This document shows positions 1-7,212 of a stretch of DNA of 7,212 nucleotides, piece after piece; the first letter of the stretch is position 1, and each line of letters begins with the position of its first letter. This DNA is from Zygophlyctis sp. KS116 (Eukaryota > Fungi > Chytridiomycota). The position numbers and the translations under genes are program-made. The notes below the pieces were generated by a model. That model had not been told where the DNA came from. It saw nothing but the letters and a program-made list of their open reading frames with translations, and made no database searches. The DNA lies in NCBI GenBank assembly GCA_054661495.1, contig BAAFSQ010000413.1:1-7212 (forward strand). Direction: 5' to 3'.

Positions 1-89
1 GAAAGGGTGATATTAATATCGCTGAAGGAACAGTAATTGAATGAGTGATACTCAGCATTTTCTTAGTACTTGAGAGCAACCTTATCAAT

Positions 90-900
90 AAGGATGAAGT
101 GGAATTGAAATCTTGGATTTAAAAAAAGTTGGCAAAAGGCCTGATAAGACCATCTAAATCTCCTGCTGCAGCTCCTATTTTCTTTGTCCCAAAGAAAGAC
201 GGTGGTCTAAGGCCCTGTATAGACTATAGACAGTTGAACTTGAACACTGTGAAGGATCAATTTCCCCTTCCTCTGATCTGAGATGTGCTGAATAAGTTTA
301 AAGATGCTAAGATATTTACTAAACTAGATTTAAAAGGCGCTTATAATTTAGTCAGAGTTAAGGAAAATGATGAATGGAAGATGGCATTTAGATGTAAATT
401 TGGTCATTATGAACCTTTGGTTGTGCAATTTGGGCTTACGAATGCTCCAGCGGTTTTCCAAAGATTCGTTAACCATATTTTTCAAGATCTCATTGATTGT
501 TAGGTCTATAGTACCAATATTTCAGATCATAGAATCATGTTAAAGAAGTTTTGAAGCGTATTCTAGCTAATAATTTGGTCTTAAAGTCAGAAAAATGCAT
601 TTTTCATGCGAAGGAAGTTACATTTTTAGGATTTGTGATTTCTGATACAGGTATTAAGATGAAAAAAGAAAATAATGAAGTTATTCTACGTGTTGAACCT
701 CCTAGCTCTGTGAAACAAGTCACATGTTTCCTTGGGATGATTAATTTTTATAGAAAATTCATTTCTAAATTTTCTGAAATCGCCACCCCTCTTACTCGAT
801 TGACGAAGAAGGATGTTGATTTTCGATGGACTGAAAATTGTCAAAAAGCTTTTGATACTTTAAAGGATAAGATAAATCAGGATGTTATTCTTAGACATCC
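90..900 (+). pseudogene. pol: Gypsy reverse transcriptase and connection domain (pseudogenised)
   Basis: Translated motifs [104 protein letters not shown]. Stops at 120-122, 279-281 and 501-503. The YxDD motif expected at ~500 is missing (DLIDC*VYS). Confidence 0.93.
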
Positions 901-1775: not shown

Positions 1776-2680
1776 GAGCGGATTGGTATTGATTTCTTAC
1801 AGAATCTTCCCAAAACTAAGAATGGAAATCGGCATGTTATTACTTGCATAGATTACTGTACAAGATTTGTGTTGGGTAAAGCAGTCACTAAAATGGATTC
1901 AAACAATCTGCTAAAATTTCTTTATGATGATATATTGATCAAGTTTGGATGCCCCTATGAAGTAATTTCAGATCAAGGTTCAGCATTTCTCTCCGAATCA
2001 GTGATAAAATTCTTTGATTTTCATTATATCAAACATCTACCTTCTTCTCCTTATCATCCCCAGACAAACGGGATGGTCGAACGAATGCACCGGGTTCTCA
2101 ATAACTCAATAGCTACCTTGATTAATACTAACACTCATAGATAGGATGAAGTTCTCAATGATTGTGTATTAGCTTTAAATGTTAGAAAACACAGTGTAAC
2201 CGGATTTTCAGCTTTTAGATTACTCTATGGTATTGATCCTCGCCTGCCGCAGGAGTTTTGTGTGCCTCGGCAAGTGACGGCGCCTCTAGATGACGTAGAG
2301 AAAAGAAATCTGATTTTGGACAGAAATGCTCAAGAACTGGACTCTATCGGTCAGAATAGAGCTGCTGCTTATCAGCGTTCTCTAAAACAGGCTTCTAAGT
2401 GGACTGATGGTCAGAAAGAGCATAATTTTAGATTTGAAATTGGACAAATGGTGAAGAGAAAAAGATTCAATGCTCAAAAGTTTGAGAATAATTGGACTGG
2501 AGTATGAATTTCCCTTTACCTATTGGCTTCAAACTCCGGATGGAAGAAGATTAGAATCTACAGTGAATAATCACATCTTGCTCCTTGGATAGAGAGAAAT
2601 TACTCTAATGCAGAAGTTCAAAACACTGATGGTTTATTTGGTAATAATGATACTAATGTCGCTGATTCGTCATCAGCGGT

Positions 2681-2692
2681 AGAGGAGGGGGA
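2681..2692 (+). other. Polypurine tract (plus-strand primer) of the Gypsy element
   Basis: AGAGGAGGGGGA, 3 nt before the TG that starts the LTR. Confidence 0.9.
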
Positions 2693-2695
2693 TAT

Positions 2696-2979
2696 TGTGA
2701 ATTTAAGTTTGTTGGGTCTGGATGAAGGCTAATGCCTAGGAGCCATGTACTAACCTTTTTACTCCCTGTAGCAGGGTTTTTACGGGTGGTACTTAACGTG
2801 GCGTGATTTACCTCTTTTCAGAGGTTTATCTTAAGAAATCTAATCTTTTTATAAATCTCATTGAATTACTCAATTAAATTGAATTTAAATCTATTTTTTA
2901 AGCTTAATTTAATTCATATTGGACGTTGACAAATTGCTATTTTAAATTTAAATAAAAATGCGATTTTCCAATCCTCACA
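2696..2979 (+). repeat. 3' LTR of the Gypsy element (284 bp)
   Basis: Starts TGTGA just after the PPT and ends TCACA (5-bp terminal inverted repeat, TG...CA). Contains TATAAA (2850-2855) and AATAAA (2951-2956). The 5' LTR is not in the window, so the right boundary rests on the terminal IR only. Confidence 0.8.
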
Positions 2980-2985
2980 GCTTAG

Positions 2986-3067
2986 GTCAGTTTGTCCGAG
3001 TGGTTAAGGAGATAGACTAGAAATCTATTGGGCTTCGCCCGCGCAGGTTCAAGTCCTGCAGCTGACG
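2986..3067 (+). tRNA. tRNA-Ser(AGA): tRNA-Ser, anticodon AGA (IGA), intronless, 82 nt, CCA not encoded
   Basis: Acceptor GTCAGTT/AGCTGAC with discriminator G; D arm TCC/GGA; anticodon stem ATAGA/TCTAT with loop CTAGAAA (AGA at 3019-3021); long variable arm GGGC-TTC-GCCC; T arm GCAGG-TTCAAGT-CCTGC; A box 2993-3003 and B box 3046-3056. Confidence 0.97.
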
Positions 3068-3089
3068 AAACCTCTCACTAAGGTATAAA

Positions 3090-3096
3090 TTTTTTT
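3090..3096 (+). terminator. RNA polymerase III terminator (T7 run)
   Basis: TTTTTTT starting 23 nt downstream of the tRNA 3' end. Confidence 0.75.
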
Positions 3097-3109
3097 ATTT
3101 TCTCCGGTC

Positions 3110-3641
3110 TGGTTAAAACACACTTTTTGTCAATCAGTGATTCAGAGCTAATATTTGCTTCTAGACGGATAGAACTTGATTTATCGTGATAGCCAGCATG
3201 GCCTGGAAACAGCTCTCAGTTTGATCATTTTTCGCTCTACTGAAAAGATCAGATCCTGGTTTGTTACCATATCTGATCTGTAATGAAGAGGGTATAACAT
3301 ATGCATCCGACCATTTAAAATTAAATGGTCGAGGGGTGTTCAAATATTTGGTTCCCACTTTAAATAGTGCGCTCAATGACTCAGAAGCATTTTAAATCAC
3401 TTACTGATTATGATTTATTTATGAAGAATAACGTAGCAGTTACAATCATCAATAACATTCATTTGAGCTGTTCAAGAAATTAAATATTGTCAGAATCCAA
3501 AACCTATAATTTCCATATTTGCTGATCTTTGGGAAGAATCAGATCAATCTGTTTGGAATAAGTTACCATTGACTATCCGGGGAAATTTCAATAGGGAAAC
3601 CCTCCTAAAAATGACAGAAAAAATATCGAGAGTAATTTCAT
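3110..3641 (-). pseudogene. Possible decayed secreted trypsin-like (S1) peptidase remnant
   Basis: ATG at 3641 gives signal-peptide-like MKLLSIFFLSFLGG. After a 1-nt shift the frame reads VSLLKFPR|IVNG (RIVNG at 3579-3565). Later fragments in different frames: AHYL (3372-3361), PSSLQIRYG, HAGYHDK...IRLEANI (from 3200). No GDSGGP seen. Confidence 0.25.
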
Positions 3642-4307
3642 GGCTAATACTAATTTTTAGGTTCTCACTATTCTTAAGTGGAAGGGTAAGGGCTAGTTTT
3701 CAGATATAAGAAAATGACTTCCCTGCCTAAAAGCATCACATGAAACCTGTGCTAGGTTGTAGAGAAGCGTTATGTCTGAGCTGAAAGAATATAGCATCGA
3801 TGCATCAGCAGGACCCATCTTTCATCTTCTTTAGCAGCCTGCTTACTTTTCAATGTAGATTCTTTTTTCTAACTAAACCTAGCCGTATTGGTACTTTTGG
3901 TTAAGTACTGCGTCTTGAAGTGCGGCCTCTTCTGCCAATATGACCCAAAGTGCTATTTTCTTTCGTAGTCATTCGAATAGAAGGGCTCGATATTCATAAA
4001 TTGATTTTGATCAAATTCGACTTGTTGCATATCTTCTGTCTGAACTCCTCGATCAACTAATTGTGCAATACGCTCTTTTCCCTATTCTTTCATTTGTTTT
4101 TTGGAGATTCTATGGAACACTCGCGAGCGAATCGCTTCAAAATCTGAGGATATAGCCCCTGTTTTGCGGCTGACTCTATACAAGGGGTATGGTTTCACTT
4201 TGGGCATTGAGCAGCAAAACACTTAAAATCTGATGTGTCAGTTTTTTTTAATCAACTAGGACACATCAGTGTGGCGCATGCCTTTATACTAATGAAAAAG
4301 TCTAAAT

Positions 4308-4769
4308 TTAACTCTCCCCCTGACTTTGGACTCCATATAATCCAAATCCTTTCATCATGGTACGTAGCTTATGACCAGGAACACATTTGGTGAATATATC
4401 GGCCAATTGATTTGCCGTAGGACAATAGATGAATTCAATCACATTTTGATCAACATAATCAATGTGTTTTGTCCTTTTTATGATCCTCTGGATTCTTAGT
4501 AAGAGCAATGCAAGCCTGATTATCTTTATAAAGTTTGATTTTTCCTTGAGATTTTCCAAGAACTTGTGATAACTGCTTTAACCATAAATCTCCATTTGAA
4601 GCAGAGACGGCGGCATAATATTCTGATTCTGCATCCGACTGTGCAATAACAGACTGTTTCTGAGATAACCAAGATACTAAAGAATTTCCAACTAAAAATC
4701 CAAATTCACTTCTAGACTTATATCCACCTTCATTGTCATATGAAGCATCAACATAAACAATCAATTATA
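4308..4769 (-). pseudogene. pol: Copia RNase H domain, frameshifted
   Basis: YVDASY, KSRS, SWLSQKQ, AESEY, DNQACI, H.RTKHID, CPTANQLADIFTK across ORFs 4459-4764 and 4308-4559. Confidence 0.93.
4312..4321 (-). other. Polypurine tract of Copia element A; the 3' LTR probably begins ~4313 with a mutated TG
   Basis: - strand AGGGGGAGAG followed by TTAAA at the end of RNase H. The usual pattern is GGGGGAG-TGTT; here it reads GGGGGAG-AGTT. The far LTR boundary could not be located. Confidence 0.7.
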
Positions 4770-5690
4770 ATCCATTTCTGACTTATAGATCAGTTTTACA
4801 TCAAAGTTATTTGACAAATATTGCAAGGTCTAATATGAGTTGGCTTGGGATTTTCAAGATACTGACTAACAACAGATAATGCACATGCCAAATCAGGTCG
4901 AGTTGCAAGCATAGCATACATAAGACTACCAACAATACTGCGATATGGAAACTTTTCATCTGATATTTCTTCGTTCTCTGCATCTTGTAGTAGTTTCTAA
5001 TAATTATGAGGTAAATGACTTGATTTCCTTTCATTTCCGATATATTCTTTGCATTTCTTCTCTAGACAGACCTTTTGATCCAGAGTAATATTTCCATCAT
5101 CAAGTTGATTGAACGCTATTCCAAGATACCATTCCAATAGGCCACCTTCTGTAATCCCAAATTCTGTTCGAAGATTCTCTCTAAATCTATTAGTATAACG
5201 AGGCTTTCCAACAGTCACTATATCATCGACATAAATTCCTAAATAAATTTTTTCTGAAAATTCCTCATTTGCATTTACTTAGATACATGGATCGGCTTTT
5301 GAAAGATAGTTGTGCAGCACAAGATACTATTCTCGCGGATATTGTTTCAACCCATATAAAGTCTTCTGTAGAAAACATAATTCACTTGAGCTTGAACTTT
5401 CGAATCCCTGCGTCTGAGACATCCAAACTCTCTCCTTTAAGTCCCCTTTAAAAATGCCGTCGGTACATCATCCTGATAAGCTTTTAATTTGAGTTTCGCT
5501 GCTAATGAACCCTAATGCCGCTAAGATGCGAATAGATTTAAACTTTGCTACAGGTGCAATTGTTTCTTTATAGTCTATCCCCTTTCTTTGACTATATGTT
5601 GCTAAAATCCATTTATCTTTCTCTGGCGAAGCCATAGCTTCTGCATAATTCTTGGGCAATCTTGGAAAATAGATACACTGAAGCATCTAA
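4770..5690 (-). pseudogene. pol: Copia reverse transcriptase (RVT_2-type), pseudogenised
   Basis: Motifs as listed for element A, spread across several frames. In-frame deletion between KDKWILA and TYSQRKG removes the KWV and KARLV motifs. Confidence 0.92.
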
Positions 5691-6201
5691 AGAATTCAGG
5701 GTTTTTGACATCAACTATTGGTAAATTGATCATTCTAGATAGGTTCACCAGATCTAATAGAAATGTCAACATTTTCAGATCCTCTGTTTACGACAATGTG
5801 ACCGTTATCGATTGCTTTGTCAACACTATCTGTTAAACCAGTAGTACGAGAATTGGACTACGTTCCTTTTCAAAATAATCACCATCATCAGAATATTCTT
5901 CATTTTCACTATTATAACTTGGTTCTTGATGTTCATCATATGAATATAGTTTCCCATATAAAGATTCATACCACTCGTCATAAGCTTTATTCATTGTTCC
6001 ATTCAATGGCTCCATAATTTCTTCCTCTAAGAAAACAACGACTGGAGAGTACACTATTTTATGATCACATTCTCTTAGAAGCTTAAATCCTTGCCGTTGT
6101 TTTACAAATGATTCAACCCTCTACAACACGACCAGTTATTCTTTCCTTTTCCTTTTCTAATTAGTCTATTAAGAGTGTAATCGTAATAGGAAGGAGGTTC
6201 T

Positions 6202-6420
6202 GTGTTGTCACAGATGTTGTCCTATAGGTACAAGGGTCAGGGCGTAGAAGTCCATTGTGACGAAGTCATTCATCTGATGAATGAGCTTTCTGATAAGGGT
6301 ATGACTCTTGCATCTGAACTATCTGTTTGCATCCTTCTCTACTCGCTGCCCGCGGAACTCTCGAAGTTTGAAAGTTCTATCTCTGGGTAGCACAACTCAA
6401 AATCTTTAGCAGATGTATTG
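6202..6420 (+). pseudogene. gag: Copia gag (UBN2/Retrotran_gag_2-like) fragment
   Basis: Pattern V..H......L...L...G..L......ILL.SLP....F..SI, typical of the Copia gag core; recognised by eye. Confidence 0.7.
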
Positions 6421-6432
6421 GGTACCAATTCA

Positions 6433-6456
6433 TCCGCTGGTAATTCCGCTGGTAAT
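6433..6456 (+). repeat. 12-bp perfect tandem duplication
   Basis: TCCGCTGGTAAT x2 (6433-6444, 6445-6456). Confidence 0.95.
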
Positions 6457-6749
6457 GTAAATCGTCAAAGTGACGCTGCAATTAGTTCTGAAATTGAAGA
6501 TAATTTAGAACTAAGTACTAACGGTAGTACGGATGAATTTGAGGATGCTCAATCATCATTTGCATTCAGTTACCAGAGTTCTGAATTAGATCAAGCAAGT
6601 AGTCAAAGAGACTACCTTGGTAGTAAGTTTGTGATTCAAAGTGTTGACATCTCACCACCAAAGGACATTAACGGTCCACCACAGTATAGTAAGTCAAGAT
6701 CTCACTATCGACCTGTGGATGATGAATCAGTAGAAAGCTTACTATTGAT

Positions 6750-7212
6750 TTTAGGTGAACCAGAAATTTACAAAGTAGCCATGGAATCGGTTCATTAGGA
6801 TCAATGGTTCGAGGCCATGAAATCTGAGATGCAATCCATGTATGAAAACCAACCGTGGGAGTTGGTTTAATTGCCTCAAGGGAGGAAGATTGTTGATTGT
6901 AAATGGGTTTACAAAATAAAACAATGTGATCAGGGCAGACCACGGGGTGGATTTTGATGAAACATATGCACCGGTAGTAAAGTTTTCATCCATGCGAGTA
7001 TTTCTGATAAAAGCCATATTGATGAAAATGACAATCCATTTGATGGATGTAGTCACAGCATTTCTGAATGCACCGCTTGATGAAGAAATCTTCATGAGAC
7101 AAGCACTTAAAGCTGAAAATAATTGAACGATTTAATGTAGCAGTACCTGCGGATATGGTCAAGGCTAAGGGGAAGATCAAAAAGCTCAAACTCCGACTGA
7201 ATATTAAAGAGT
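6750..7212 (+). pseudogene. pol: Copia reverse transcriptase fragments (element B)
   Basis: N-terminal RVT_2 motifs are present. KARLV, LYGLKQ and YVDD are missing; the sequence jumps to KIIERFN at ~7115. Confidence 0.88.

Follow-up and report, generated by a model that had tools for sequence, protein, structure and literature searches.

A gypsy LTR beside a tRNA-Ser gene in the chytrid Zygophlyctis sp. KS116: probable integration of retrotransposons without a chromodomain at Pol III start sites

Targeting of Pol III start sites by gypsy retrotransposons is textbook 'safe-harbour' integration. To our knowledge, start-site targeting has so far been documented in ascomycete yeasts and in Dictyostelium. 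In the genome of the chytrid Zygophlyctis sp. KS116, we found a gypsy long terminal repeat (LTR) that stops 6 nt before an intact tRNA-Ser gene. This locus raises the question of whether the LTR was placed there by integration directed to tRNA genes or whether the two sequences came together in some other way.

Our analysis favors the first answer. With a probability of about 85%, the locus contains an old, degenerate gypsy copy from a clade that has no chromodomain and inserts just ahead of tRNA genes, within a few base pairs and at or beside the Pol III start. Such Ty3/Tj1-like targeting of Pol III start sites is seemingly unreported for chytrids. It would add a chytrid, together with a broader clade of uncultured freshwater relatives, to the known cases, and this clade lends itself naturally to comparisons of how intasomes recognize the Pol III machinery.

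The gypsy copy in the window and its tRNA-Ser neighbor

The window, that is, the whole stretch of DNA analyzed, comprises the first 7212 bases of contig C413 in an assembly of 12.7 Mb and 1175 contigs. Pfam matches, a frame map, tblastn and homology to other copies located a degenerate Ty3/gypsy pol on the plus strand (77 to 2680), apparently truncated at its 5' end. Its Pfam domains, all on the plus strand, follow the order reverse transcriptase (RT, 282–500), RNase H (904–1176), integrase zinc domain (1600–1848) and integrase core (1755–2141), and a GPY/F-type C-terminal domain with a short tail occupies 2145–2680. According to the frame map, the pieces are scattered over three frames and in-frame stops are present. 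They are 31–43% identical (tblastn) to the polyprotein of a complete element on contig C167.

The plus-strand primer site, a polypurine tract directly 5' of the 3' LTR (2681–2695, plus strand), ends with ...GAGGAGGGGGATAT. Both the tract and the LTR start (TGTGAATTT) are identical in a copy on contig C781, and the LTR of a copy on contig C97 begins at the same base as the window LTR. The 3' LTR (2696–2979, plus strand, 284 bp) belongs to a family that we call A and has the terminal inverted repeat TGTGA...TCACA. Its end, ..CCTCACA, aligns with ..GTTACA of the 5' LTRs on contigs C698 and C652, where the LTR end is followed by a leader and then the gag ATG, with no tRNA. Thus, the LTR truly stops at 2979, the tRNA lies outside it, and both LTR ends are fixed by copies elsewhere. 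Besides the window copy, the family A LTR has eight further matches in the assembly, and the window LTR is 87–89% identical to its closest relatives. On this evidence, the window copy looks old and incomplete.

A 6-nt spacer, GCTTAG (2980–2985, plus strand), separates the LTR from an intact tRNA-Ser(AGA) gene (2986–3067, plus strand), the probable integration target. The first four bases of the spacer, GCTT, are the expected target-site duplication, given the 4-bp duplications in related copies. The gene was recognized by ARAGORN and matches the Rfam model RF00005 over its full length with 55.9 bits, against a gathering score of 29 for this model. A run of seven T (3090–3096, plus strand) is its likely Pol III terminator; T-runs stand 3' of nearly all sampled tRNA genes. 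An earlier reading of the sequence without any search, hereafter the sequence-only reading, had described the polypurine tract, an LTR ending at 2979, GCTTAG and a tRNA-Ser(AGA) from 2986 on the same strand; ARAGORN, Rfam and the LTR copies elsewhere all agree with this arrangement.

The 5' part of the element was also searched for. Homology of the window to the C652 and C698 copies begins at about 77. Searches of the assembly with window positions 1–110 and 1–2695 gave neither a 5' LTR of the window copy nor an adjoining contig. Positions 1–76 are unrelated to the element downstream and have no second match in the assembly. The junction near 77 corresponds to the k-mer of the assembler and may be either the true truncation point or a graph artefact. 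The copy on C652 (L075, 1–3020, minus strand) is a deleted family A derivative, in which the 5' LTR is succeeded by leader, gag, protease and the first part of RT, which runs straight into a partial LTR; between its RT portion and the window element the identity is 92%.

Beyond the tRNA-Ser gene, some 2 kb farther downstream, the minus strand carries the remnant of a Ty1/copia-type reverse transcriptase (5000–5278; Pfam RVT_2, E 2e-7), so a second, unrelated element flanks the same gene. Throughout 3100–7212 the reading frames are broken, and small repeats are held in common with contigs C133, C320 and C340.

Zygophlyctis sp. KS116 is present in several freshwater metagenomes among public runs. 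Logan contigs from four freshwater or source runs were aligned to window positions 1800–4800, and no empty-site allele was found among them. Two candidates were rejected: a loose end at 2986 stems from a paralogous tRNA-Ser gene whose downstream flank differs, and a 151-nt contig (2969–3119) that might have read through the junction reaches just 11 nt into the LTR, too short a stretch to count.

LTR ends near tRNA genes in the genome and in related elements

To obtain an unbiased sample, we searched the assembly with the Rfam tRNA model, obtained at least 62 matches, fetched up to 700 nt upstream of each gene and read the flanks. After exclusion of three likely mitochondrial genes on contig C172 and of matches without a usable flank, 56 nuclear tRNA genes could be evaluated. 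Because LTRs are collapsed in the assembly and the tRNA list is a sample, all copy numbers given here are lower bounds. On C172 (L013, L014; 8086–8410), tRNA-Trp, tRNA-Pro and tRNA-Asp are tightly packed and have AT-rich stems, and the contig is probably mitochondrial.

We found that 15 of the 56 nuclear tRNA genes (27%) have a block ending in ..ACA, mostly ..TAACA, 4–13 nt upstream of the mature 5' end. If the window and contig C233 are included, the offsets are 4, 5, 6, 6, 6, 7, 7, 8, 8, 8, 9, 9, 9, 10, 11, 11 and 13 nt, with a median of 8. These 17 genes represent 12 anticodons, and about ten LTR families are found beside them in both orientations. A sharp peak of LTR-end-to-tRNA distances over several isoacceptors had been named as support for targeting, and the sampled genes show such clustering. 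With an insertion at about a quarter of the sampled tRNA genes, these elements mold the tRNA gene landscape of their host.

Family A itself was found at two further genes: on C233 its LTR stops 6 nt before tRNA-Pro(AGG), and on C309 it stops 13 nt before tRNA-Asp(GTC), in both cases on the same strand as the gene. Many tRNA-bearing contigs end 77 nt into the upstream block, which is the k of the assembler, and have an exact 77-nt overlap with gypsy pol contigs; tRNA-adjacent elements therefore also break the assembly at tRNA genes. Elsewhere, identical block ends precede a leader and gag ATG, a primer-binding site (TGGTAGCTTGG) or a reverse-complemented polypurine tract. At the second tRNA-Asp gene of C309, an integrase C-terminus, a polypurine tract, an LTR and the tRNA stand together on one contig. 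From the contig overlaps and from these leader, primer-site and polypurine contexts, it follows that the tRNA-adjacent blocks are gypsy LTRs.

The LTR 3' end points toward the tRNA in 10 of the 17 LTR-flanked genes, and the 5' end does so in five (C167, C349 and families G, H and I); the remaining two belong to family C. The same-strand placement in the window is therefore no rule, since the opposite orientation occurs in 5 of 17 cases. Four 5S genes and one U6 gene have no adjoining LTR; at a rate of 27% about one would be expected among them, and five genes are too few to decide either way on targeting of all Pol III genes.

The two tRNA-Asp(GTC) genes of C309 (L076; 495–704 and 4158–4367) lie 3.7 kb apart and share 210 nt at 98% identity, made up of the gene, 129 nt downstream and 7 nt upstream. 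Their LTRs come from two families and stop at offsets of 13 and 9 nt. To judge from the sequence, they look like independent hits on paralogous targets.

The length of the target-site duplication can be read from two copies. A complete element on C167 has two 100% identical LTRs of 212 bp, is bounded by TGAT on both sides and lies 11 nt from a tRNA-Asn gene. On C43, a solo LTR before tRNA-Lys has AACA on both sides, and if the LTR and one AACA are taken out, the upstream motif comes back to its usual distance from the gene. Both cases indicate a duplication of 4 bp, so that GCTT is expected at the window. The sequence-only reading had left GCTTA and GCTT as candidates; in view of the 4-bp duplications in family members, GCTT is the likely one. 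The 5' LTR on C698 and the LTR with tRNA-Pro on C233 were considered as two ends of one element and rejected, since their flanks (ACATAT and AAATAT) contain no clean 4-bp duplication; the 81-nt overlap of the two contigs is a reflection of LTR identity.

Moreover, an LTR end is followed by exactly 4 nt and then by the next LTR start on contigs C1002, C927, C503 and C476 and on the metagenome contigs L110 and L114. Such stacked junctions would be expected from successive elements that cut at one and the same 4-bp site.

The same arrangement was found outside this genome. The C167 polyprotein has thousands of relatives, of which the nearest (42–61% identity) are unnamed proteins on element-sized metagenome contigs. 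We fetched ten such contigs, whose polyproteins are 42–43% identical, and in three of them, those with a flank long enough to show a tRNA gene, such a gene lies 8–11 nt from an LTR end. On L114 the LTR end is 8 nt before tRNA-Gly(GCC), on L118 it is 11 nt before tRNA-Pro(AGG), and on L119 the LTR start is 9–11 nt from the 5' end of a tRNA in the opposite orientation. By this sequence comparison, tRNA-adjacent insertion is a property of the clade and not of a single genome.

These results bear on three other explanations of the adjacency. The first is that integration is random or loosely targeted and that purifying selection in a compact genome spares only the copies next to tRNA genes. The genome is indeed small (12.7 Mb), most random insertions would strike genes, and the copies examined are all fixed and mostly old. 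However, selection cannot yield a window 10 nt wide or the reuse of the same 4-bp site, other intergenic DNA would be equally safe, and the C167 element lies in the same window even though its identical LTRs mark it as recent. We consider this explanation improbable.

The second is that the adjacency arose by chance or by a later deletion and that integration is blind to tRNA genes. The window copy is old and truncated, and on C97 one family-A-like LTR sits amid debris of other elements with no neighboring tRNA. Against this, an LTR end lies at most 13 nt away in 15 of the 56 sampled tRNA genes, the probability that an LTR end placed at random lands in such a window is about 1e-4, and sites are reused to the base, with the same arrangement in related elements from other samples; chance is thus a very unlikely cause. 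A permissive Rfam scan found no tRNA remnants beside the tRNA-less LTR copies on C97, C446, C173, C476, C781 and C652.

The third, that the tRNA is carried by the element as cargo or belongs to a segmental duplication, which would make LTR and tRNA travel together, could draw on the 210 nt shared by the tRNA-Asp pair, but it is hardly credible when 5' LTR copies end at the same base and continue into leader and gag, 12 anticodons occur with unrelated downstream flanks, and the paralogous tRNA-Asp genes bear LTRs of different families at different offsets. The many isoacceptors with unrelated flanks thus uphold the proposal of a tRNA-targeted gypsy group over chance, a deletion artefact and cargo.

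For the preferred reading, integration just upstream of tRNA genes, the most likely mechanism is suggested by analogy with Ty3 and Tj1. TFIIIB, the Pol III initiation complex bound upstream of the tRNA gene, would hold the intasome in place, and a 4-bp staggered cut would leave the LTR end 4–13 nt from the mature tRNA 5' end in either orientation.

Host tRNA promoters and their likeness to LTR ends

Upstream of 40 LTR-free tRNA genes a shared pattern is seen: a TATA-like element lies roughly 30 nt from the mature end and is followed by GTGC and then by ATTTTCC..RAA..TTA. This native motif ends 1–5 nt before the mature 5' end (loci L017–L066; for example L022, L042 and L043). The pattern suggests that Zygophlyctis sp. 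KS116 has TATA-dependent Pol III promoters and very short leaders. The four 5S genes have a conserved upstream region of their own, with a TATA element 27 nt before the first base, which is the transcription start. If the TATA spacing is equal at 5S and tRNA genes, tRNA transcription should start at about −3, and the 4-bp duplications would then lie just upstream of it; this start near −3 is what we infer from TATA spacing alone. The short distance between LTR and tRNA would be due to the very short predicted pre-tRNA leader. For comparison, the Ty3 duplication lies at −6 to −2 relative to the start (doi 10.1101/2021.07.27.453949).

We compared this native motif with the LTR ends. A 38-nt profile was built from the 5' flanks of LTR-free native tRNA genes, and 51,000 control windows served as the null; a stricter profile used 18 genes whose motif sits too close to the gene for an LTR origin. 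Native flanks had a leave-one-out median of 13.2 bits, and the 99.9th percentile of the controls was 5.8 bits. Family A LTR ends scored 9.4–21 bits on the native-flank profiles, a level reached by at most 2e-4 of the controls (10–21 bits and at most 1e-4 on the 38-nt profile of LTR-free genes), and family A 5' LTRs away from any tRNA also scored on the native-flank profile. The window LTR end reached 13.0 bits on the 38-nt profile (null fraction 2e-5) and 12.0 bits on the 18-gene profile. In the window, this promoter look-alike occupies 2939–2976 (plus strand) and consists of a TATA-like element followed by TGCGATTTTCC, stopping 3 nt short of the LTR terminus. In general, the match stops 2–3 nt before the terminus, which is the usual distance between native motif and tRNA. 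Families B and D, whose sequences are unrelated to that of family A, scored 10–14 bits. The look-alike is absent, on the native-flank profiles, from families B', C, E and F and from the C167 element.

It is possible, with odds somewhat below even, that the LTRs of families A, B and D end in a portable upstream promoter for Pol III, some 38 nt long and made up of a TATA-like element and a GTGCGATTTTCC-type motif. In that case, the LTR terminus would be laid out like position −1 of a tRNA flank. Insertion would take place between the host upstream element and the gene, the LTR would supply a replacement promoter, and the target tRNA gene would stay alive, with transcription starting within the last LTR bases. 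The native promoter would be moved away by about 5 kb with a full insertion and by about 0.3 kb with a solo LTR. A rebuilt TFIIIB landing site at the LTR end might also draw the next insertion and so produce the stacks of LTRs separated by 4 nt.

The competing explanation, which we place just short of even odds, is that the likeness between LTR ends and tRNA flanks has nothing to do with tRNA expression: either it reflects signals of the element, for example a poly(A) signal or U5, or the native promoters are themselves relics of ancient LTRs. The window LTR has AATAAA inside the look-alike, which could thus serve RNA processing of the element itself. The look-alike block is not extra conserved; its mean pairwise identity is 0.72, compared with 0.71–0.72 in neighboring blocks of the LTR. 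Half of the families are without the look-alike and still adjoin tRNA genes, and in some 'native' genes the motif lies 3–9 nt farther upstream than the mode. On the other hand, the match extends over 38 nt and keeps its register with the LTR terminus across two or three unrelated families. An origin of native promoters from LTRs is opposed by two observations: native flanks are LTR-like only within about 40 nt, with no further LTR homology in BLAST, and the native motif ends 1–3 nt from the tRNA, too near to leave room for an LTR end and a 4-bp duplication. The look-alike end faces the tRNA in six of six adjacent copies, a number too small for significance.

In yeast, where tRNA genes do without an upstream TATA, an inserting Ty3 displaces no promoter element. 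The host of Tj1 is without tRNA TATA boxes (PMC4600332), and Guo and colleagues considered a tRNA promoter likely to be disrupted by an insertion that separates the TATA box from the start (PMC4600332). Unlike the host of Tj1, Zygophlyctis sp. KS116 appears to have the upstream element, the elements insert between it and the gene, and some LTRs seem to carry a copy of it. If the promoter reading is true, it would be an adaptation of a retrotransposon to TATA-dependent Pol III promoters; the Tj1 literature names this problem and reports no solution (PMC4600332). If the LTR copy is functional, an element could split a promoter from its gene without killing the gene, and a share of the tRNA genes would now be driven by retrotransposon sequence.

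Integrases, primer sites and known tRNA-targeted elements

The C167 element encodes gag, protease, RT, RNase H and integrase in a single frame of 1318 residues. No Pfam match to the chromodomain (PF00385) was found in this polyprotein or in its nearest relatives; the domain turns up only among relatives at 34–38% identity. The family A frame is intact on C781 and ends about 45 low-complexity residues past the GPY/F-type domain, and throughout the clade the integrase of relatives stops 2–50 residues past that domain. These short lengths exclude a chromodomain. The elements thereby differ from chromoviruses, whose integrase has a C-terminal chromodomain (PF00385).

Ty3 of Saccharomyces cerevisiae belongs to the same superfamily, and among solved structures its RT and RNase H were the best matches (7q5b and 4ol8; E 1e-94 and 2e-78). 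Its insertions lie within a few base pairs of where Pol III begins transcription at tRNA genes, in both orientations, and solo LTRs are left there (PMC5006619, PMC5911963, doi 10.1101/2021.07.27.453949). In Ty3, the duplication measures 5 bp and about 15 bp separate the LTR from the mature tRNA end, whereas the elements described here have 4 bp and 4–13 nt. Ty3 had been described beforehand as lacking a chromodomain, which is incorrect: its integrase has a vestigial chromodomain that binds Brf1, and its C-terminal domain touches TBP (doi 10.1101/2021.07.27.453949). The integrases of the present clade are without the chromodomain that Ty3 uses for Brf1, so any tether to TFIIIB must be a different one. 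Since the duplication is 4 bp rather than 5 and there is no chromodomain, contacts with TFIIIB would differ in detail from those of Ty3.

Tj1 of Schizosaccharomyces japonicus, also a Ty3/gypsy element, is closer in its offsets. In S. pombe it inserts 5–11 nt from mature tRNA ends, 1–10 bp upstream of starts predicted from TATA boxes (PMC4600332). These offsets match those found here, but Tj1 has a 5-bp duplication and a single orientation, in contrast to 4 bp and both orientations. The 6-bp offset in the window, which the sequence-only reading had called unusually short, is ordinary beside Tj1 (5–11 nt; PMC4600332) and a non-LTR element of Dictyostelium (2–6 bp; PMC5006619).

DGLT-A of Dictyostelium resembles the present elements in being a Ty3/gypsy element without a chromodomain that lies upstream of tRNA genes (PMC5006619). 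Its distance from the mature end is 13–33 bp with a mean of 15 (PMC5006619), compared with 4–13 nt and a median of 8 here. Beta/Tca8 of Candida albicans and Tyl3, Ylt1 and Tyl6 of Yarrowia lipolytica are Ty3/gypsy elements found 5–30 bp upstream of tRNA genes or of their starts (PMC5911963); their hosts are all Ascomycota, whereas the present host is a chytrid. In the literature we found tRNA-targeted gypsy elements for Saccharomyces, Schizosaccharomyces, Candida, Yarrowia and Dictyostelium, and none for chytrids or other early-diverging fungi. As read from the sequences, the variant features of the present elements are the 4-bp duplication, the absence of a chromodomain and, in some LTR ends, a resemblance to the host tRNA promoter.

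Primer-binding sites also differ. DGLT-A has a canonical TGG primer-binding site (PMC5006619), and family A has none after its 5' LTR. The same absence of a TGG site after the 5' LTR was seen in families D and E (C698/L002 403–440 for family A; also L079 on C521, L089 on C609, L087 on C476 and L092 on C512). In family A, the 5' LTR is followed by AAGTATAAACC.., a run of A and the ATG, and in families D and E it is followed by GTTTGAAAAGACC.. or GTTTAAACAGACC... Families B' and F and the C349 element carry the canonical primer-binding site TGGTAGCTTGG.
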